A DNA stretch of 64,000 bases from assembly GCA_023334545.1 (NCBI GenBank), contig JAADVB010000048.1, forward strand, positions 29,397 to 93,396, written 5' to 3'. The notes beneath the pieces are model-generated. The model was not told the DNA's origin, did not search any database, and was given only the letters and a program-made list of their open reading frames with translations. Within the stretch, counting starts at the first letter, position 1, and each line of letters starts with the position of its first letter. The stretch is from Salisapilia sapeloensis CBS 127946 (Eukaryota; Protista; Oomycota). Below, piece by piece: positions 2,731 to 30,322 of this stretch. A program made the translations under genes and the position numbers.

Positions 2731-4352
2731 ATCGCAGTGGGTCGTAGAGAGCATAAGTTAAGAGTCAAGCATGGAGGAAACAGACGGCTAATGGCGGTTG
2801 CGTACTTGCATACCGAATATATTCTTGCGTCTTTGCGTTGCAAATTGTACTTTTTGCGGTCGTCACCCGTCGAGTGCCGATAGGAACCGAGTGGACGGCA
2901 GACAGTTCTCGGCGGAGGAGGTACTTGAACGGTAGGAAAAGGGCGTAGCTTCACATCGACTGTGAAGGATGAACAGAGCCGACTCTCGAGGTACGCAATT
3001 GAGATCACAATCAACGAGGAGATTCTCTAAATCACATCAGATAAAAGAGCACATGTACATATCGCATTATTGCTCTACGAGATGCTCTTCCATCGGCGCT
3101 TCTTTCTTCCGTCGTAAGCATTATTCCTCCCACTCGACTCGTCGATCAAATTGGTAATGAGAAAGGTTAGTGTCACAAGTAGAAGTTGCGAGTTTACCAT
3201 AAGATTGACAGGTACGAGGGAAACAAGGATGTAGTCGAGAAGACAGCAAAGACGGGAATTACACGACATGCTGCTTTTAGGATGCAAGCAGGAAATTCGT
3301 GCGTGGAGACGAAAAAGCGTAACATCACGAGCACGAATTGTCGACAGAAGCGTCAAGGTATCGGTAATCAATTCCAAAAGTGGATCATTTCAATTTCTAT
3401 TTTATAATAGAGTCTTCCCTCGCAAAGATGAACTCCTAATAAATAATATGACGCAACGAATGATCAAAATCGGCCAATTTGAAGTCCATCGTTTTTAAAT
3501 AGATTTTCTAATTCGAGGTAAAAACAATCAAAACTACCTAACATAATAATTGATCTGCAAAAAGTGCAAATTTGATCGATTTAACCACTGTCTTCATAAT
3601 AAAATCCGTCTATCCTAGTAATTTATTGTTTGATGGTCTTCTATACGGGTGTACTATAAGATTTGCCATCATAAATGTTTTTCCATGTTCCCCATGGAAG
3701 AAATCTTGGCTTAAATCTCCACACGATAATCTATCGATCGTTAATTTCTATTGGTCAATATTACGACAGTCTCACAATATAGACCTGGCCGTTACTATTG
3801 CACTACCTTCAAGCATAATAAATTTTCAAACATGATAATTCATTGTATAACGCTTCTTCACGATGATAATCATTTGTGGGAGTTCTGGCTGTATCATCGT
3901 ATCTGAAGTAGTATCTGTAGCCAAGTACAGTACGAATTGCCGGGTACATCGCTTCGGCGGATATATTTCGTCTGGAACTACCTTCTGACCCATCATATTG
4001 ACTCCTACGTCACATACGGTCTACATGGCGCACACGTACAACTCAACAATCAGCATTTCGATATTGACTGCCAGTGCCAGGTATGATAAGGATGTCAAGC
4101 AGTATGGACTGCGAATGCACGGGTCTGACTGTGCACGAGATCCCTCGCGGCTGTTGCAAATCGTTTATGACCATCAAATCTAAACAAAGTGTCGACTAGC
4201 AAGGATGATGCAACAGACGATACATACGAATGGAGATGCCAAAGGTAGCAGCCTCCATCTTTTATCGTCCCTCGAAGCAATTAGCAACGGGACGCTATCA
4301 TCGTCGCCGCAGCCTTTCAATTTGCTTCATCATTTCTAAAAACGCAGCGAGG

Positions 4353-5366
4353 ATGGAAAGACACCAGTGGCAACAACTTGTGGACGCAGCAACAGGCTGG
4401 ACACCTACCGACTATCTTACCTTTCAGGTATACGTCGAAGGTCATCCGGAAACTGTTGGACATATCCTCCCGACTTTTGCCAAGGTTTGTCAACTATAAC
4501 GAGCATGATACCCAACTTTCACTTTACTAAACGATTCTCTGTAGAAACTCAACCAATTCCCACAGCTCTTGGAATGTCGTCCGAACAGCATCGTCTTACG
4601 ACGCGAGTTTGACTCGACTGAAACCCGCACCGAAGCCTTTAACCAGATCATGGACACGCTTCGAAAGCAAGGTGAATTCCCTCGTTGGACCAACGAGACG
4701 TACGCCGCGAAACTCGAGTTTGACTCGGCTCCTCTCTTCTACTACGACCGTGGCGTCGCACCTGACTTTGGTCTGAAAATGTACGGCACCAACCTGAATG
4801 GCTATGTCTGCGACGATACCACTGGTCGGATTACCGGTATCTGGATCGCAAAGCGAAGCATGAGCCGCAGTTCCTGGCCTGGACGACTCGAGCCAATGGT
4901 CGGTGGTGGGTTACCAGCAGACACGGCTCCTCGCGACAGCATGGCACGAGAAGCATATGAAGAAGCTGGACTCAGCCCAGAGTGGGTGAAACCTCGTCTG
5001 AGTGCCTGCGACACGATTACCGCTCTCAAGGATTCAAAGAAGGGGTTAATTAACCAGTCTTCCTTCATCTACGACGTCCAAATGCCACGCGACATGACAC
5101 CAAAGCCAGTGGACGGCGAAGTGGAAAGCTTCTATCTGTGCGCACCAGGTGAGCTGATTTCGCTCTTGGCGCAACGTCCAAACCTTTTCCGGCCGGAAAC
5201 GGCGCTCGTCCTCGTCGACTTTGCCATGAGACACGGACTCCTGTCCTGCCAGGACTTGGACGACTTCACAGAGTTCCGAGATGCTCTGGAGGAGCCCAAG
5301 TCGATTGAAGAGCCGCTCGCTATGCAGAGCAGTCCTACCAGCATTCATCAGCCGCTTGGTCTTTAA
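4353..5366 (+). CDS. Nudix hydrolase, YJR142W / NUDT20-like with DUF4743-type N-terminus (2 exons)
   Basis: Nudix box GGGLP...AREAYEEAGL, IWIAKRS, WPGRLEPMVGGG, PKPVDGEVESF. In-frame 60-nt GT-AG intron 4485-4544 joins an ATG at 4353 to ORF 4569..5366. Confidence 0.85.
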
Positions 5367-5462
5367 TAATTTTGCACCAAGGGTTCCGAGATGAATCAAG
5401 TACATGAACGTGAGTGAAGATTTTCCATTAAATGTCAATGAGAAACTTTTTAAAGTTAATTG

Positions 5463-6876
5463 TTAGTTCATTACATCCCAACGACTCTTTCTTATCCTAG
5501 GTACCTCTCGTTGCGACGCAAGGGAAGCATCATGGATGGTGTGCGTCGCAGCTGGCCGATTTATTGACGGTACCTGCTGATAAGTACAAGGTATCGTCAA
5601 TGGCAACGACTCATCGACTTGTTCCGCTTTTCCAGACAATTTTCGAAAATTTGTCACAAGCTCCTTGGCTCGACTCAGTCGCATGGCCTTTGCATCCTCC
5701 TCAAACGTTTCTTTCGTCGGTGATGTTGTAGTGGAGATTTCGCCTTCGGAGTCGCTCTGTATTGACTGTCATACATATCTTTTCTCGATACCACGTTGGA
5801 TGGAATTGTACGTACGTTACTATAGTCGTCAGTAAGAAGTTTTGGCGCTGGATTTACGTGGGGAGTGACTTTTGTCTTCTTCTCTGATGCCGGATGGAGC
5901 AGCACGTTCGGCGGATCATCTCGTAAGAGACAATAGTACTCGTGTAGCGCACTCGAAGGATCCAGAAATGCAAAAGATGCATTTCCGACCTGACGAACCT
6001 ACAAGAGAACATAAAGCCTGGTTAATACCCACTAATCTCTTCCATATATGCTCGCTCGCAGAATGTATTATTTGACTCGTAGCTTTGGCAAGTTCATTAT
6101 CAGAGTATTAAAGGTTTTGGGCAAGCATGATTATACATGGCTCGACCAGGAGCCAACATAAACTACTTTTATCCGCTTTCAAGCATTTTAATGATAGATA
6201 AGATAGAGCTTACGCGTAGCATGACTTCAAGCTGTGGATGGGATCGCACCCTTTGAGCTGTGGACCAAATGACGTCGTGTTCTTTTGCACTAGACGGCTA
6301 TGATAATATAACGTAAAGATGGATTGAAAGCCTTACATATTGAGAAAATACCGGAGTGATGTTGTTGGGAAGTTTCATGAAAGGAATGTACGCTTCGTGC
6401 TCATCCTGCGAGAGATCTTCATGTACATGCGCATCCTCTGGATACGAATATGCAAAGCGAGTGTCTACATTGGTAGTCTTTTCTTCGACTGGAGGATATT
6501 CTGCCTCATAATCATGATATCGAAGCCAGTGAAGACGAGAAGCGGTTTCCTCATCTACCGCCGAATCGTTTTGGTCAATGAACTGTAGCTTTCGCTTTCG
6601 ACTTTTGTACCGTTTGAATGAATGCTCGTCTTGCAATAGGTTACGAGCATCATAACGGTCCAGCCACAGCGGACTAGTACTCTGGACTTGAGATTGAGAT
6701 TGCCACTCAATCAAATGCATCTCTTGATGCAAATTATACGCCGTTGACGGATCTTGCAAAACAGTACAAGCATAGCCACGAACTCCAGACATTAGTGGAT
6801 GAGTTTCTGCGACCTTATACTGATGTATCGACTCGAATTGACCATGCGTAAGCTGCGTGGTGTCCTCCATAGGCAT
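5463..6876 (-). CDS. SFSWAP: Suppressor-of-white-apricot (SFSWAP)-like splicing regulator: DRY_EERY domain + SURP domain (4 exons)
   Basis: LDRYDARNLL and WLRYHDY (DRY_EERY). Spliced SURP: IWSTAQRVRSHPQLEVMLR|VRQVGNASFAFLDPSSALHEYY. Introns near 6300-6350, at 5999-6213 and a 50-nt one near 5767-5816 restore the frame into ORF 5463..5684. Confidence 0.75.
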
Positions 6877-22883: not shown

Positions 22884-24869
22884 GTAAATTACGCTGCAAT
22901 AGCAAACTTGTTTTAGCTTGTGGTTATTTTCTCAACCTTTACTGGTAACTTCGCCAACTCGACTGGTTCTAATACCGAAAGCAAATTGTCAGGTCAATAC
23001 GATTTCTCTCGCACTATATTGACTAGAAGAAACCAATTGAGCTGTCAGCGTCAACGCTGAGATTTGTCGCTTCTAATCCAGTAAACGGTCACATCAACTT
23101 TTACGATCGAATGCCATCTCTTTGTGACACGAATGTATTTATCTACATCATCGAAGAGATTGTTTGGCCGATTCATCGTATTGGCTATAGCATTTGGCTG
23201 AGAAAACTAAGGCTTGTACGAAAGCCAGGTCACCGTACTTTGGTTTCTACTTTGTAATTAAAGTGACGATTTGAAAGACAAACTTGTAAATCCTACAACG
23301 CTCAAGTATAATTGATTATCTACTCCGTCACCTAACTCTATATGCACTGATCGTGTATTACACCACCGTCTTGTGCCTTTTCAAGCGACTTTAGATAAAC
23401 AGCTCTATTTATTTGGCCGATCCAAATGCGCCTGCAGATATATCTTTCACTAAGCCTATCATAACCTTAACTGTCCTGTAGCGGTTTTTGTCCCCTGAAC
23501 TATCCAACTCACATCAGGTACTCCCATTCATGCCGTAGATGGCCTAAGCTACCACTAAATACTTCCATGAAAGGTATAAAACTCATATATATGCGGTGCA
23601 ATATCTCCTTCTAGTGATATCACTCGATTGTTTTTGTCTATTATAAGCTCTACTTGCGTTTAATGTACGATTTCATTGAAGTAAATAACGTAGCATGTAG
23701 TAGTGAGGAAGATGGTAGGCTCTGACGACAGGTTCATATCATCGAACAAAGTACTTGCTATCAAAGTGTTGATGACCGTATCTCAGTGTTGACCCAGGTA
23801 CATTAATCGTAGCGTGCAAAAAGGTCTATTCCGGATGGATGGAAACGTACTGAATAGTTATTTCAGCCGACTTTTCTCTACAAGATACCTATTTTGCCCA
23901 TCAAATGATTTATGGCACTCGTCAAAGGCGTGGGCTGATTGCACTTGATGTAATCAATGAAAGATAATTGACATGTGGGCTATGTCATAAGGTTTAAGAC
24001 ACCGTAGTCTGAAAGTCTGGGTTAAAAATACTCTATCTTTGCCTATCAACATATCATCCACTCTGCCTATTTCGTTTGGTCCGGCACTGATGAAATAAAG
24101 ATGATTGAGCATAGCACTAGAATGCCAACCGATCAGTGTACACTTTCGATCCAATGACAAACCACTGTGAACGGCGTCTGCTCAAATAGACACTGTCGAC
24201 TAGGAATATAAAACGGACAACACTGCCAACACATCCACCGGATAATTCTCGTAAATATTCCCGAAACCTTTAAGTCATAGGAGCAGTGGTTGGATTCGAG
24301 ATCGCTTCTGGACCATTAAAAAGTTGGAATGCAACAAGGTAATGGGTGGCAATGACGTTCGCCAACGAATGATCATGATTTCCAATACACTTACATAACG
24401 TATTACGATGAAAGCCCGCTCAGCATCATCTCAAGATGTATTTGCTAATGGCCATCTTCAAAGCCATTCCTCTAGCATTACCATAGTCGTCGGACAATGC
24501 CAGTCAAAGCGCTTCCATCGAAAAACTACTGCACCATCCGATCAAGTATAGCACATTTCCAGGTTGATAGCTCGTATTTAGTTGCTTAAAAATGCATTCG
24601 CACGGAACAAGGTCGTCACGAGGACGTCTAAACGCGGACGTCTCGAGCTGGTAATCTGGTCTCTGCCGTCGTTTCAAGATACTCTAGTATCCACATAAAT
24701 GCAGTTGCGAATGCAAATACCCAAATCAAGTTTAAATAGCGTCTATTTTTAGAACCATTGTAAGATCTGAGTCGCATCAAGAGGCATACTTTATCCAAGT
24801 GAAGCACCAAATGGCTCCGTCCAAAACACAACTGAGCTCCCCATACCTTAGGCACTCTCCCCACCGGCA

Positions 24870-27725
24870 ATGAAGGCAACGGGCTCGGCAGTCGGCGCCA
24901 TCCGCGATGTCGTGCGCCGAAAGAGCGGAAGCATGAACTTCAACAACAGCTTCGGTCTGTTCCGGAACAACTCCAACGGCGGCAGTGGCAGCGGTGGCGA
25001 AGAGGACGACGATCCGTACGACGACGACGAGCCGTACGGTGGTCGCATTCGCGGAAATGAAAAGTCTCGCGATCGATCCGGCTCCCAGTCGGACGTTAGC
25101 CGAGACACGCCATCGCCTGCGCTCACCAGCAGCAGCGTGTATGTGGAGCCGCCAGAGCCCAACCTACCTTCTGGCGGTCTGTGGGAAGCTGCGACTAGGA
25201 ATGTACAGGGCAAGCTACGAGATTTGCTAGACGCCGATCATGAAGTCACTACCTCGCTCGTAAGCCCTTTGCAATACTTTTTTAATGCACAACAAGCCTA
25301 AAACGTTTATGATGATCTGTAGGACGATGATTCGATCGAGTGTGGTGTCTTTCGCTCCAGATCGGCTCTTTACTCGGATAGAACGCTCGTCATTATCGGC
25401 AATAGTGATGGCTCTCCCGCTGGTATGTGGAGTGAAAGTCTGTGCGTACGGTCTGGAAGCCAAGGTGGAGGCATCTTCAAAGGCGCATTTGGAAGTATGC
25501 TGCCGTACTTGGTAAAGGCAAAAGAGGACAAATTTGGTGTCGTCATCTTTGACGACGTCTTCCGAGACTCACGCGAGAACGATGAAATCGACATGGACAG
25601 CGCCATCACTCGCTTTGTCACTGGCTGGCGCAACCACGTCCTCAACTCGCGCGCTACTCACGTCTTCCTCCTCGCCTATGGTGACGGCGGCGACTTGCTT
25701 GTTGAAACCCTGCGGAAACATGTGAAAGAGATGCAGAGGCACATCAGTGGCATCGCGTTTGTCCAATCCACACATCATATATCTCGACAGGACCCCTACC
25801 AGCTTCGAAAGATGCTGGCGCAGTGGGCAATCGCGTACGTGTCGTCGGACGACGTGATCCTCGCTCGTCTCAAGAGTCTCGAAGACGAACATGGTTGCGT
25901 CTGTCTTTCCGCCGGATCCGAATCCTCCGACGTGGACGTTTTGAATAACATCTTAGCGTCCATCTTTGCATCCTTCAAGGCTCGTTGGTCTGGCTTTCGC
26001 GTGAAAAACGTCAAGAACGGGATGGAAAAGAAGTGTTATCTATGTAAAAGTACGTTTTCCATGCGTCGCTGGCGTCGACACTGTCGCACGTGTCAGAACG
26101 CTTGTTGTGACAAGTGTTCGAGCGTCGAGAACACGCGACACGAAGGCCAAGTGCGTCTCTGTCTCACCTGTCGCGCCCTCCCGTCGCTAATCCACTGGTC
26201 TCGACCACGTGCAGTGCGTACAGGTGAGCAAGAGAGCGTCTACAGCTCTTCTGCTCGTCGAGGCAAGATGAGTGTAAACGACTTTGAGCTCGTGACAGTC
26301 ATCGGAAGAGGTGCTTGTGGTAAAGTCTTGCTGGTACAGAAGAAGGCTGGGAGTGATGCTGGTCATTTGTACGCGATGAAAGTGTTAAAGAAGGAGTGGG
26401 TGATGAACAAAGACTTGGTGAACCAGACAATGGCCGAGAGACGTATCCTTCAGGAGGCGTCTCATCCATACATTGTCCAGCTCAAGTACGCTTTCCAGAA
26501 CCAAGACAAGTTGTACATGGTCATGGAGTACTACAGCGGCGGCAGTCTTCGCCACGTGCTGCGTCGTCGAGGTCGCTTTAGCATCAAACGCGCTCGCTTC
26601 TACCTAGGACAAATCCTCTTGGCGATCGGCCACTTACACTCGTTAAACATCTTGTATCGCGATTTGAAGCTAGAAAACATTGTCATCACAGCCGACGGAA
26701 ACGTTGCATGCACGGACTTTGGTCTGTCCAAGGAACAAATGGACGATGAAGAACGCACGAGCTCTTTCGTCGGTACATGCGAATACCTCGCACCAGAGCT
26801 CATTCTTAAAGAAGGGTATGGTCGAGCAGTCGATTGGTGGGCGTTTGGTATCTTGGCGTATGAACTCATCCAAGGCGACTCTCCTTTCCGTCATAACACG
26901 CCAGCGTTGCTCTTTGAGAAGATCCTTAAGGACGATCCGACGTTTAGCGAAAGGTTTACACCGGAAGCAGAGGACTTGATCTCGAATTTGCTCTGTAAAG
27001 ACCCGACGAGACGCCTCGGGTGTGGAGAAGAAGGCGTGGAAGAGATCAAGAGCCATCCGTTCTTTGATGCCGTTGACTGGGACGCCTTGTTGCGGATGGA
27101 GGTGGAAGTCCCGAGACCGCCGCATCGCATGGAAGACGTGACGGATGAAAGCCACTTGGCACGTGCGATCGCCAAGATGCGAGAAGCGAGGGAAGAACTC
27201 ATGCCAGACTCGCCCGTCTCGTTGCCGTCTTCTCCGAGCGAGAATCGCCACTTTGACCGGTTCTCGTACCAGGGAGACGGATGGAATCCAGCTATGATGG
27301 GCATTCCGATGGACGAAGGAAGTGATTATCAGCCAGACACGATAGACGAGGACGAGGAGTACATTCCAGACGAGTTCGATGAACCAGGCACACCACCAGA
27401 GAAGTCGGACTTGATGACGGCAGCAGAGACGGAGCCGACGATCGCCAACCCGGCTCTTATGGAAGTCGCTGGGGACGGAGACGGCGTGCCGCTGTCGCCG
27501 TTGTCACTAGCAAGAGAGAACGCTTCCAAGAACTCGAGTACAAAGCCGATGACGTCGCCATTGCGAGGCCCTTCCAGCAATGCTGCAACCGTGTCTAGTC
27601 AGGAAGAGAGTCCAGCCGTCGGTCATGGCAGTCTGTCGCCTACGACGCCGCATGACATGTACTCGCCCGGTACTCCGGAAGAGACGGAGAATGGGGCGTT
27701 AAAACCGTTGGAAGCGTCCATGTGA
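24870..27725 (+). CDS. Arb2/FAM172-like domain + FYVE-like zinc finger + AGC Ser/Thr kinase (2 exons)
   Basis: Intron 25260-25322 joins ORF 24870 to the frame of ORF 25425. Arb2-like TLVIIGNSDGSPAGMWS..GSMLPYLVKAKEDKFGVVIF..VFLLAYGDGG..IAFVQSTH; 8-ligand zinc finger; kinase GRGACGKV, YAMKVL, YRDLKLEN, DFGLSK, GTCEYLAPE; hydrophobic motif FDRFSY. Confidence 0.85.
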
Positions 27726-27835
27726 TCGCGTGATTGATAAGTGCTGATAAAGTTTTTCATGATTTCATTTTGCATCTTTCATCTCCAACCAAGGACTGCG
27801 TTGCTCCAAATACAAGAAAAAATTGTGCATTCCAT

Positions 27836-30322
27836 CTATCTCCTAATGATTGCTTTACTACGGGTCGGGGCACCGTGACTCTTGCCCTTGACGTTCCCTT
27901 TGCCGCGCTTCGACTTGCTCTTACTAGACACCTTGACGCCTCGAGAACGCGCCTTACGAGCCTCTTCTTTACGGATCTTCTTCTCGCCCATGAGCTCATC
28001 CTTGGCATTCTTGTTCACACGCGCCATCGCCGGCTTCTTACCGTTACGGTAGTCCATACGAGGTCCATCGCCGTCCTCTTCGCCACCCGTATTAACCTTC
28101 TTGTGCTGTCGCTGCTGCCACTTCTTGTACAACTCTCCCGTCTGGTGCTTCTTCTTGACCGCCGCGCCACTCTCGTTGCGACGTTTGATCTTACCAGAGC
28201 TCGAGATCTCACCCACACTCGTTTTGACGTACTTCTTCTTCCGCGTATCCCAGTGGAGCACACGCCGCTTCTTGTTCATTTCAATCGCTTCATCCGGATT
28301 CACATCCAGCACCGCTTCTTCCAAACGAGCTTCATACGAAGCATTCGTCTTTCCACCTTCATTCGCGTTGGCAAGGAAGCCTTCCGTTTCTTCATCGCCA
28401 CGAACGGCACTGATGTAGTTCCCGTCATCCTTGAACGTATCCTTCTTCTCCACCGACTCTTTCGTGGCCAAAAGCTCTTGCTTCACATCTTCTTCCTTTT
28501 CACCTGCAGCAACACGTTTCTTCAGTTGCTTCCGGTCATGCTTGGACAAGAATGCCGCCTTTATCGGTTCTGCGTCTTGCTTGACCTCCACCACTTGCTC
28601 TTGCTTTGCTTCATTCTTGTCTTCCACCTCGGGCATCGGTTCCTCCACTCCATTCGCTTTATTCAGCTCCGTCTGGATGATCTTTTCATGATGCTTCCGC
28701 TTCGTCTGCATCATGACAGCACCAGGAGACGTCTTCTTCGCCGAGTGAGCACCGATACCGACTTCAAAGATCGTTTGAGACGGTCGGAAGGTCTGTAGTG
28801 ATGCAATGTACTGTGCTTTATCTGCCTTATCTGGTGCTTCCAAGTACTCTTTCTTAAACAACGGATGCAACTGCTTCGTGTCCACATCTCGGGCACGTCG
28901 GATGGAGTTCTTGGCCGGATCAGCTCTCGTACGAGCATACATCTTGTGAGCATTCGCCACGACCTTGACAAGAGGTTCCACTTGCGGATGGTGATGGAGA
29001 ATGTACTGCTGCTGCTCGGACTCTTGATCGATCAAGTCATTCGGAAAAGAGCCGTAGTGGACATCCTCCACTTGCATGTCTCGAAGGTGGTATCCTTCGG
29101 TCTTTGCTGGGGAGGAGTCTTCCAATCGACGACCAATGTACAGATGCAAGTCGACCATGAACGGCACTTCATCCGGATCGACAAAGCTAAAGGCCGTACC
29201 GCTTCGTCCAGCACGTGCAGCTCGACCGACACGATGGACGAAGAGCTTGGCAGTGGATGGGAACGAGTAATTGAGGACGTTGTTAAGCAACGGGATATCG
29301 ATACCACGAGCAGCGACATCCGTTACGATGAGCAGCTTGGTCTTTTGGCTACGAAACTTGCCAATGTTGATCTTACGTGACGCTGGATCCATATCACCAT
29401 ACACGCAAGAGCTTTCAATATCATTCGCTTTCAACAGTTCATGCAACAGCTCGACATGATGTCTCGTGGCTGCAAAGATGATCGTCTGGTCGTCCTTTGG
29501 AAGGAACTGTCGGACCAAGTAGACGAATAGCGCTGGCTTATCGTCCGATCGGACGGTGAAGAAGGCCATTTTCAAGTTCTCACTGATCTTGTTCTCGACA
29601 TCGAGACGAATGAGCTCGGGGTCACGAAGTCCAGCACGAGCGAATTGGACCAACGCCTTGGGTAGCGTAGCACTGAACAAGAGCGTTTGTCGACTGGATG
29701 GGACGGTGCTTAGAATCTCCTGAAGCTGTTCGGCGAATCCCATCTCGAACATCCGATCGGCTTCATCGAAGACAAGGTACTCGACACTGGACAAGGAAAA
29801 GTCTGGAATTTCCTGCAAGTGGTGCATGAGTCGACCTGGTGTGGCGACGAGGACGTCTGGATTGGAGGCTAGAGCTTCGAATTGAGCTTCCATGCCGTCA
29901 CCACCGACGATTAGAGACACTTGGACGGAAGTGAACTTTGCCAGTTGCTTTGCAAAACGCAGAGTCTGGACAGCAAGCTCACGCGTTGGAGACAGAATGA
30001 TAGCACGGACACCGACGCGAGTCGAGTGTTCCTTTAGATGCTCCAGCATCGGAATCAAGAAAGCTGCCGTTTTACCCGAACCAGTTCGAGCCATGGCAAC
30101 ACAGTCTCGACCAGACAGGACGATTGGAAGCGTCTTACGCTGGATAGGCGTTGGGACCTTGTAGCCCAAGGCCATGACCGCTCGAAAGACCGGCGGTGTG
30201 AGGCCCATGGACTGAAATCCACCGACGCTCGAGTTCTTACCACTACTTTTGCCATGATGCGCTGCACCAGCCTTGTTATCACCACCTTTCTTGGCGTTCT
30301 TGAGGAAATCGTCACCGGCCAT
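27836..30322 (-). CDS. DDX54: DEAD-box RNA helicase DDX54/Dbp10
   Basis: GGFQSMGL, PTPIQRK, MARTGSGKT, DEAD, LLFSAT, HRVGRAARAG, plus DBP10CT-like WDTRKKKYV...KIKRRNESG...ELYKKW. Confidence 0.93.
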   Translation of the reverse strand: MAGDDFLKNAKKGGDNKAGAAHHGKSSGKNSSVGGFQSMGLTPPVFRAVMALGYKVPTPIQRKTLPIVLSGRDCVAMARTGSGKTAAFLIPMLEHLKEHSTRVGVRAIILSPTRELAVQTLRFAKQLAKFTSVQVSLIVGGDGMEAQFEALASNPDVLVATPGRLMHHLQEIPDFSLSSVEYLVFDEADRMFEMGFAEQLQEILSTVPSSRQTLLFSATLPKALVQFARAGLRDPELIRLDVENKISENLKMAFFTVRSDDKPALFVYLVRQFLPKDDQTIIFAATRHHVELLHELLKANDIESSCVYGDMDPASRKINIGKFRSQKTKLLIVTDVAARGIDIPLLNNVLNYSFPSTAKLFVHRVGRAARAGRSGTAFSFVDPDEVPFMVDLHLYIGRRLEDSSPAKTEGYHLRDMQVEDVHYGSFPNDLIDQESEQQQYILHHHPQVEPLVKVVANAHKMYARTRADPAKNSIRRARDVDTKQLHPLFKKEYLEAPDKADKAQYIASLQTFRPSQTIFEVGIGAHSAKKTSPGAVMMQTKRKHHEKIIQTELNKANGVEEPMPEVEDKNEAKQEQVVEVKQDAEPIKAAFLSKHDRKQLKKRVAAGEKEEDVKQELLATKESVEKKDTFKDDGNYISAVRGDEETEGFLANANEGGKTNASYEARLEEAVLDVNPDEAIEMNKKRRVLHWDTRKKKYVKTSVGEISSSGKIKRRNESGAAVKKKHQTGELYKKWQQRQHKKVNTGGEEDGDGPRMDYRNGKKPAMARVNKNAKDELMGEKKIRKEEARKARSRGVKVSSKSKSKRGKGNVKGKSHGAPTRSKAIIRR

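Follow-up and report, generated by a model that had tools for sequence, protein, structure and literature searches.

A Salisapilia sapeloensis gene of the oomycete Arb2-FYVE-AGC kinase family, with a predicted pseudo-hydrolase domain and an altered FYVE-type finger

Known Arb2-FYVE-AGC kinases and the Salisapilia gene

In their 2010 account of Phytophthora infestans, Judelson and Ah-Fong listed both Arb2 and FYVE as accessory domains of AGC kinases (PMC3019232). PITG_01365 was placed among the "novel domain combinations", with its FYVE domain drawn in Figure 2 of that paper, and of PITG_06776 it was said that no other kind of kinase with an Arb2 domain was known and that it is kept in other oomycetes. 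Table S1 of the same paper gives FYVE and ARB2 for PITG_01365 and ARB2, C2 and FYVE for PITG_06776, while a further kinase, PITG_07055 (AGC/AKT, 902 amino acids), is listed there with zero accessory domains. Ru et al. (2023) subsequently reported five proteins that combine FYVE and kinase domains in P. sojae (PsZFPK1-5), and characterised PsZFPK1 (PMC10381902). Here we examine a gene at 24870-27725, on the plus strand of a 64,000-nucleotide stretch of DNA from the oomycete Salisapilia sapeloensis CBS 127946 (contig JAADVB010000048.1, positions 29,397 to 93,396; "the window" below), which the original prediction had read as an Arb2/FAM172-like pseudo-hydrolase fused to a FYVE-like finger and an AGC kinase, and had put forward as the best candidate for a new system, with an architecture unfamiliar from characterised proteins. 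The domain reading holds up well, as described below, but the novelty does not: the fusion was published in 2010 (PMC3019232), it is annotated across the oomycetes, and a paralogue carrying it, PsZFPK1, has already been knocked out (PMC10381902).

With its architecture on record for oomycete kinases since 2010, the gene fits into a known oomycete family of Arb2-FYVE-AGC kinases as an unexceptional member. Within this family it is the orthologue of PITG_07055, because the kinase and N-terminal sequences given for PITG_07055 in Table S1 (PMC3019232) match, and belong to, the clade of the window gene; PITG_01365 and PITG_06776 are its paralogues. A literature search on PITG_07055 returned no papers. 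Our preferred interpretation, to which we would assign a probability of about 0.72, is that the window gene encodes a PITG_07055-type AGC kinase in which a dead Arb2-type domain and a degenerate finger together form a non-enzymatic regulatory module.

Proteins with the same three domains, at 61-75 % identity, are found in Phytophthora, Peronospora, Peronosclerospora, Lagenidium, Pythium, Aphanomyces and Albugo, and the architecture is kept unchanged from the Saprolegniales to the Peronosporales; all named Arb2-kinase matches are to oomycetes, and orthologues across the group are already annotated in public databases with PF22749, PF01363 and PF00069. PITG_07055 and its oomycete orthologues, such as P. 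rubi PR002_g13416, the Peronospora effusa protein, Lagenidium giganteum N0F65_001435, Pythium oligandrum Poli38472_003916, the Aphanomyces proteins and Albugo laibachii F0WN57, share with the window protein the N-terminal motifs, the Arb2-like domain, the FYVE-like finger, the AGC kinase, the T-loop and the hydrophobic motif, and in the alignment used for the tree the Peronospora effusa kinase domain is 86 % identical to that of the window. They differ from it in their C-terminal tails, and at one residue of the nucleophile elbow discussed below, which is Gly in the window protein and in Aphanomyces and Arg in most Peronosporales.

In a tree of kinase domains, rooted at its midpoint only, the window sequence falls within a clade of 12 rows with 100/98 support, whose sister is the clade of PsZFPK1-type kinases. 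Two described kinases were considered as orthologues and rejected, namely PITG_01365, on sequence motifs and the tree, and PsZFPK1, on its tree placement and on two motifs, since it has RRIPCS in the FYVE core and Ala at the hydrophobic-motif site (PMC10381902) where the window protein has RRHCRT and F-D-R-F-S-Y. PITG_01365 and PITG_06776 belong to the same architecture class as the window protein (an N-terminal Arb2-like domain, FYVE and an AKT-type AGC kinase, restricted to oomycetes), but they are paralogues that lie in other clades, their elbows read GYSYGG and IVHENAG, respectively, and PITG_06776 has a C2 domain in addition. Like the window protein, PsZFPK1 combines an AGC kinase with a FYVE domain of degenerate core and has an N-terminal region of the Arb2-like kind; representatives that bear RRIPCS (P0066, with P0081 in the same clade) do carry an Arb2-like N-terminal domain.

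Divergent orthologues with the same three domains, 49-51 % identical in the N-terminal part, were also seen in contigs from ocean metagenomes (L001, at 4001-6346, and L003/L004; one of the contigs is from a TARA sample), possibly derived from early-diverging marine oomycetes. Two of these branch below the split between Aphanomyces and the Peronosporales, which would suggest, if the midpoint rooting holds, that the fusion predates the separation of the saprolegnialean and peronosporalean lineages.

An Arb2-like domain stripped of its conserved residues and an altered finger

The first domain, of the Arb2/FAM172A type with an alpha/beta-hydrolase fold, is encoded at 25323..26006 (plus strand, residues 1-228 of exon 2). 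In Pfam searches, for which exon 1 and exon 2 were queried separately, PF22749 (Arb2) reached 37.7 bits with exon 2 and 43 bits with the isolated domain, both above its cut-off of 26.8, and the best match runs over profile positions 174-257 of 260. A profile built from the window domain and 12 orthologues had 549 matches at E <= 1e-3 out of 1.84 billion representatives; those that are free-standing and carry a name come from metazoans (coral, hagfish, Capitella and Hydractinia) and are called "FAM172A-like" or "Arb2 domain-containing". Metazoan FAM172A-like proteins were matched by hmmsearch at E 1e-12 to 1e-19. Comparison by hhalign with 16 FAM172A-like proteins gave a probability of 99.8 % (E 1.1e-28) over 207 columns, at about 27 % identity, and the nearest ESM Atlas clusters are likewise Arb2/FAM172.

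A model built from a 13-sequence alignment (mean predicted local distance difference test, pLDDT, 73.6; predicted template modelling score, pTM, 0.79) has the form of a beta-alpha-beta sandwich, and in Foldseek it comes closest to the Arb2 domains of two class II histone deacetylases (HDACs), Clr3 (5ikk) and Hda1 (5j8j). The VIA Z-scores over 190-200 residues were 16.6 for Hda1 (6z6f_A 481-700), 16.4 for Clr3 (5ikk 459-680) and 15.8 for 5j8j, with true esterases and lipases close behind (Z about 15). This link to Hda1 and Clr3 can be seen by fold comparison only: sequence identity is 7-12 %, and a search of the domain profile against the chains of the Protein Data Bank (PDB) returned nothing meaningful, the best being TBC1D23 at E 0.7. 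Because Pfam, profile-profile comparison and fold search agree, the assignment to the Arb2/FAM172A type of the alpha/beta-hydrolase superfamily, as originally predicted, is correct.

Several side observations concern the spread of this fold. One of the Arb2-family clusters in the ESM Atlas (row 5) is mostly labelled bacterial (Planctomycetota); bacterial members would come as a surprise in a family that takes its name from silencing factors of eukaryotes. At Foldseek rank 26 stands chain 3D of 8g2z, an inner protein of the Tetrahymena doublet microtubule (TM 0.54 over 243 columns), which appears to be a structural protein with an alpha/beta-hydrolase fold and thus a possible further non-enzymatic use of it. 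In Aphanomyces (P0049, P0111 and P0160), Arb2-like domains occur in other contexts, among them 2,041-amino-acid proteins, named "PH domain-containing" at source, with two such domains, and 1,248-amino-acid kinases in which the domain lies mid-protein. Oomycetes thus seem to have reused the Arb2-like module repeatedly.

The domain is homologous to that of the metazoan FAM172A-like proteins over the 207 aligned columns, and the two share AG.W..L, GS.LPY, the GG that ends the elbow, S.H and SAG. The FAM172A-like proteins, however, are free-standing, have no Gly-rich insert, FYVE or kinase, and keep HG, AHS.GG, TDSVH and SAG..HE, whereas in the window domain all four of the hydrolase-typical positions conserved in FAM172A (HG, the elbow Ser, Asp and His) are replaced. 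The elbow A-Y-G-D-G-G (25674..25691, plus strand) stands opposite AHSYGG, column for column in both the hidden Markov model (HMM) and the hhalign alignments, with Gly where FAM172A has Ser; Q-S-T-H stands opposite the D-S-V-H of the T-D-S-V-H motif, S-A-G-S-E-S-S-D opposite S-A-G-T-N-Q-H-E, and I-G-N-S-D-G opposite I-H-G-S-G, which contains the HG that follows beta-3. Among orthologues the elbow varies as [AGVCT]-Y-[RGS]-[DE]-G-G. At the three positions that were scored, 55 free-standing representatives read S-D-H and the window protein G-Q-S; its clade reads R/G-Q-S and includes 0 members with S-D-H, and the paralogous Arb2-like kinases do not have the complete set either. His151, after beta-6, is retained. 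We considered Asp121 of AYGDGG as a nucleophile in a shifted register and rejected it, as this position varies between Asp and Glu and lies opposite the Tyr of AHSYGG (HMM and hhalign). With the elbow Ser replaced, as the original prediction had it, and the HG, Asp and His positions replaced as well, the domain is predicted to be a pseudo-hydrolase that has no candidate catalytic residues.

A further feature belongs to the clade of the window gene alone. Residues 32-62 of exon 2 (PAGMWSESLCVRSGSQGGGIFKGAFGSMLPY, 25416..25508, plus strand) hold about 25 positions that are the same from Aphanomyces to Phytophthora, so that the invariant stretch of the clade can be written PAG.WS..LC.RSG..GGGI..G.LGSMLPY. 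Within it is an 8-residue Gly-rich insert, GGGIFKGA, opposite a gap in the FAM172A-like proteins (hhalign), and the segment was modelled at a pLDDT below 50.

The Arb2-like domain is followed by a FYVE-type zinc finger (26022..26180, plus strand; exon-2 residues 234-286) with four CxxC pairs (C238/C241, C254/C257, C262/C265 and C280/C283), whose eight zinc-binding Cys are invariant in orthologues. PF01363 (FYVE) scored 27.5 bits on exon 2, marginally below its cut-off of 27.8, and is present in the precomputed annotation of many orthologues; the best solved matches to the finger are all FYVE domains (E 6e-4 to 1e-2), with those of RUFY1, EEA1, WDFY3 and Hrs at E 6e-4 to 3e-3. The canonical signature for binding phosphatidylinositol 3-phosphate (PI3P) consists of an N-terminal WxxD, R(R/K)HHCR and RVC (PMC10381902). 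In the window protein the place of WxxD holds N-V-K-N, RVC has become R-L-C, and the core at 26070-26087 (plus strand) reads WRRHCR: in an alignment to EEA1 that is free of gaps through the core, R-R-H-H-C-R corresponds to W-R-R-H-C-R, the first Arg having been replaced by Trp and the first His by Arg. The finger is thus best classified as FYVE-type with an incomplete PI3P signature. Because WxxD is missing and WRRHCR replaces R(R/K)HHCR, PI3P-driven recruitment to membranes appears doubtful. The altered core, extended to W-R-R-H-C-R-T-C, is nevertheless the same in all aligned oomycete orthologues.

The kinase and the role of its N-terminal module

The catalytic domain (26280..27065, plus strand; exon-2 residues 320-581) matches Pkinase at E 9.8e-66 and has the glycine loop GRGACGKV (GxGxxG), the VAIK-type Lys in AMK, the alpha-C Glu, YRDLKLEN and DFG, all invariant in orthologues. 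The T-loop, SSFVGTCEYLAPE, a PDK1-type site with its acceptor Ser at 26763-26765 (plus strand), is conserved and fits S/T-F-x-G-T-x-E-Y-x-A-P-E. The hydrophobic motif, read from the sequence as F-D-R-F-S-Y (27252..27269, plus strand), has H, F, F and S invariant in orthologues and is preceded on its 5' side by the conserved, turn-motif-like DSPVSLPSSPS. Beyond it, the acidic, Ser/Pro-rich C-terminal tail (27270..27722, plus strand) shows little conservation in the orthologue alignment. The closest solved kinases are the N-terminal domain of RSK2, MSK1, AKT1/2 and S6K1, all at about E 1e-80. We therefore have an AGC kinase of the AKT/SGK/RSK/S6K cluster that has no clear one-to-one animal counterpart and that looks active, as all catalytic residues are kept.

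In its general layout the protein resembles mammalian SGK3 (PX-kinase) and AKT (PH-kinase), in which an N-terminal module of a phosphoinositide-binding type also precedes an AGC kinase with T-loop and hydrophobic-motif sites, but it differs from both in that its finger has no PI3P signature and in having an extra, dead hydrolase-fold domain of 230 amino acids. The kinase would be switched on, like other AGC kinases, by phosphorylation of the T-loop and the hydrophobic motif (inputs of the PDK1 and TOR type), and the Arb2-like domain and finger may serve as a module for protein interaction, dimerisation or regulation; a hydrolase role for this module, or membrane anchoring by it through PI3P, would be unlikely. 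That the module is non-enzymatic is suggested by the analogous Arb2 domains of Hda1, Clr3 and FAM172A and by domain deletions in PsZFPK1. The Arb2 domains of HDACs are inactive and alpha/beta-hydrolase-like, with a role in protein interaction (PMC11878206), and FAM172A, Hda1 and Clr3 all homodimerise through this domain (PMC10205598); in Hda1 and Clr3 (5J8J, 6Z6F and 5IKK) it is attached C-terminally to a deacetylase, in contrast to its N-terminal position on a kinase here. No report of an enzymatic activity of FAM172A was found in the literature searched, including a search that combined FAM172A, Arb2 and hydrolase. Knockouts of PsZFPK1 grew less, formed fewer oospores and were less virulent; the protein needs each of its three parts, namely the N-terminal region (residues 2-321), the FYVE domain and the kinase domain, and T602 of the T-loop matters (PMC10381902).

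Several points weigh against this interpretation. The functional data come from PsZFPK1, a paralogue, and not from the orthologue group of the window gene, and can be carried over to it by analogy only. The term "pseudo-hydrolase" is relative to a triad conserved in FAM172A-like proteins that is itself only putatively catalytic. A ligand site or an unusual activity at the Gly-rich insert is possible, given the low-confidence fold there, and the invariant W-R-R-H-C-R-T-C core, which to judge by its conservation is clearly functional, might bind a phosphoinositide or another ligand. Finally, the RNA status of the three sequencing runs (X1-X3) from which spliced contigs of the gene were obtained was only guessed by the tool.

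Of the other explanations, the one that survives best, although we consider it improbable, is that the Arb2-like domain senses a ligand or partner, or has a non-canonical activity, with the invariant segment W..LC.R.G..GGGI..G.GSMLPY forming a pocket that gates the kinase, on the model of the catalytically weak alpha/beta-hydrolase receptors. The roughly 25 invariant positions, the Gly-rich insert that has no counterpart in FAM172A-like proteins and the retained His151 would all fit such a sensor, and the receptors KAI2, D14L and GID1 are indeed among the generic fold matches. These matches are, however, generic to the superfamily, true esterases scoring equally well, and both the ligand and the pocket, in a segment modelled with such low confidence, are hypothetical. 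A slightly less probable extension is that the Arb2-like domain with its Gly-rich insert and the WRRHCRTC core act as a joint sensor, gating the AGC kinase downstream of PDK1/TOR; it would respond to a small ligand, to a lipid other than PI3P, or to a chromatin or Argonaute partner. If true, this would amount to an oomycete-specific coupling of nutrient signalling to another pathway.

We regard as distinctly unlikely the scenario developed from the original prediction, in which an Akt/SGK-like kinase is recruited to membranes and binds Argonaute or silencing factors of chromatin through its Arb2 domain, so that PI3P signalling would be connected to the control of small RNAs. The N-terminal domain is a true homologue of FAM172A-like proteins, FAM172A does bind AGO2 (PMC10205598), and an association of Arb2 with chromatin and small interfering RNA was noted by Judelson and Ah-Fong (PMC3019232). 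Yet identity to the FAM172A-like profiles is only about 27 %, the residues conserved in FAM172A are gone, the arrangement of a split nuclear localisation signal (NLS) known from FAM172A is not seen in the window protein, and in the finger WxxD is missing and the PI3P motif is short of one His, while the paralogue PsZFPK1 is cytoplasmic with or without its FYVE domain (PMC10381902). Moreover, the name "Arb2" stems from one yeast protein and not from a demonstrated Argonaute-binding surface. Argonaute binding can therefore not be deduced from a domain that is so divergent and catalytically stripped and whose alpha/beta fold is generic; nothing ties the gene to Argonaute or small RNA, and for the proposed route from lipid signalling to small-RNA control we found zero evidence.

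Marginally less likely again is a chromatin-directed, MSK-like kinase, in which the Arb2-like domain would bind histones, as has been reported for Hda1, and bring a kinase of the RSK/MSK type to nucleosomes. The best structural matches are, after all, the Arb2 domains of Hda1 and Clr3, MSK1 belongs to the group of closest solved kinases, and the automatic annotation of several orthologues reads "ribosomal protein S6 kinase alpha-5". However, MSK1 does not stand out, since AKT, S6K and RSK reach equal scores, and the NLS and the histone-binding surface are hypothetical; the signal of the paralogue, PsZFPK1-GFP (green fluorescent protein), peaked in the nucleus, but the empty GFP control did so too, so that its localisation is indistinguishable from that of free GFP (PMC10381902).

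Gene model, neighbouring sequence and significance

The gene has two exons on the plus strand (24870-25259 and 25323-27725), with its ATG at 24870 and its stop codon at 27723-27725, and encodes 930 amino acids; the coordinates with which it was originally predicted are exact. Exon 1 (24870..25259, 130 codons) encodes a low-complexity N-terminal region, in which no Pfam family was matched, and ends in phase 0 at a GT. Its translation nonetheless aligns along its full length with the N-termini of orthologues, stopping right at the splice junction, and contains the conserved motifs IRDVVRRKS and YVEPPEP..GGL.EAA..NVQGK...HEVTTS; the junction itself, HEVTTS|DD, agrees with the orthologues. A conserved basic motif at 24900-24930, (V/A)VRRKS, found in the window protein and most aligned orthologues, resembles a phosphorylation site for basophilic kinases (RRxS). 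The 63-nucleotide intron (25260..25322, plus strand, GT..AG, phase 0) is followed by exon 2 (25323..27725, 800 codons and the stop), which as one open frame carries the Arb2-like, FYVE-type and kinase domains and the C-terminal tail.

The three runs X1-X3, which belong to a single study, yielded contigs that match the window at 100 % identity and connect 25259 directly with 25323. These contigs begin at 24838-24843 (about 30 nucleotides 5' of the ATG) and span the entire coding region. Since the GT..AG intron has been removed exactly, they are probably complementary DNA (cDNA). They extend into the convergent gene of a DEAD-box RNA helicase, and therefore demonstrate that exon 1, the N-terminal domain, the finger and the kinase are co-linear, but not where the transcript ends at its 3' side. 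In a second organism with about 97 % identity, 37 of the 40 listed differences fall at codon position 3, from which we infer purifying selection on both exons. The gene is thus expressed, being spliced in RNA-type contigs, and under purifying selection. That the N-terminal domain and the kinase belong to separate genes or transcripts, merged by read-through into an artefactual gene model, is next to impossible: nothing in its favour was found beyond some split or truncated database orthologues (e.g. Phytophthora entries of 461-677 amino acids), and it is contradicted by the presence of all three domains in one unbroken exon, by an intron-free contig in each of the three runs that spans 24840-27900, and by full-length orthologues in at least seven genera.

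The helicase (828 amino acids, minus-strand open reading frame at 27836-30322) has its stop codon 111 nucleotides from that of the kinase, and the crossing of both genes by the X1-X3 contigs suggests that the 3' ends of the two convergent transcripts overlap or abut. Conserved kinase subdomains at 26481-26735 are in addition matched by short pieces of other X1-X3 contigs with higher coverage, which probably stem from other AGC kinases, paralogues expressed by the same organism.

For the field as a whole these results change little, as the architecture has been in the kinome literature since 2010, is annotated in Pfam and UniProt, and was addressed by the 2023 knockout of a paralogue. What they add is that the PITG_07055 clade, for which no accessory domains were listed in 2010, does carry Arb2-like and FYVE-like modules, along with such minor points as the loss of all four FAM172A positions, the clade-specific Gly-rich insert and the divergent orthologues in marine metagenomes. 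Oomycete-specific kinases have been discussed as fungicide targets, and a clear map of their domains may help in this regard.

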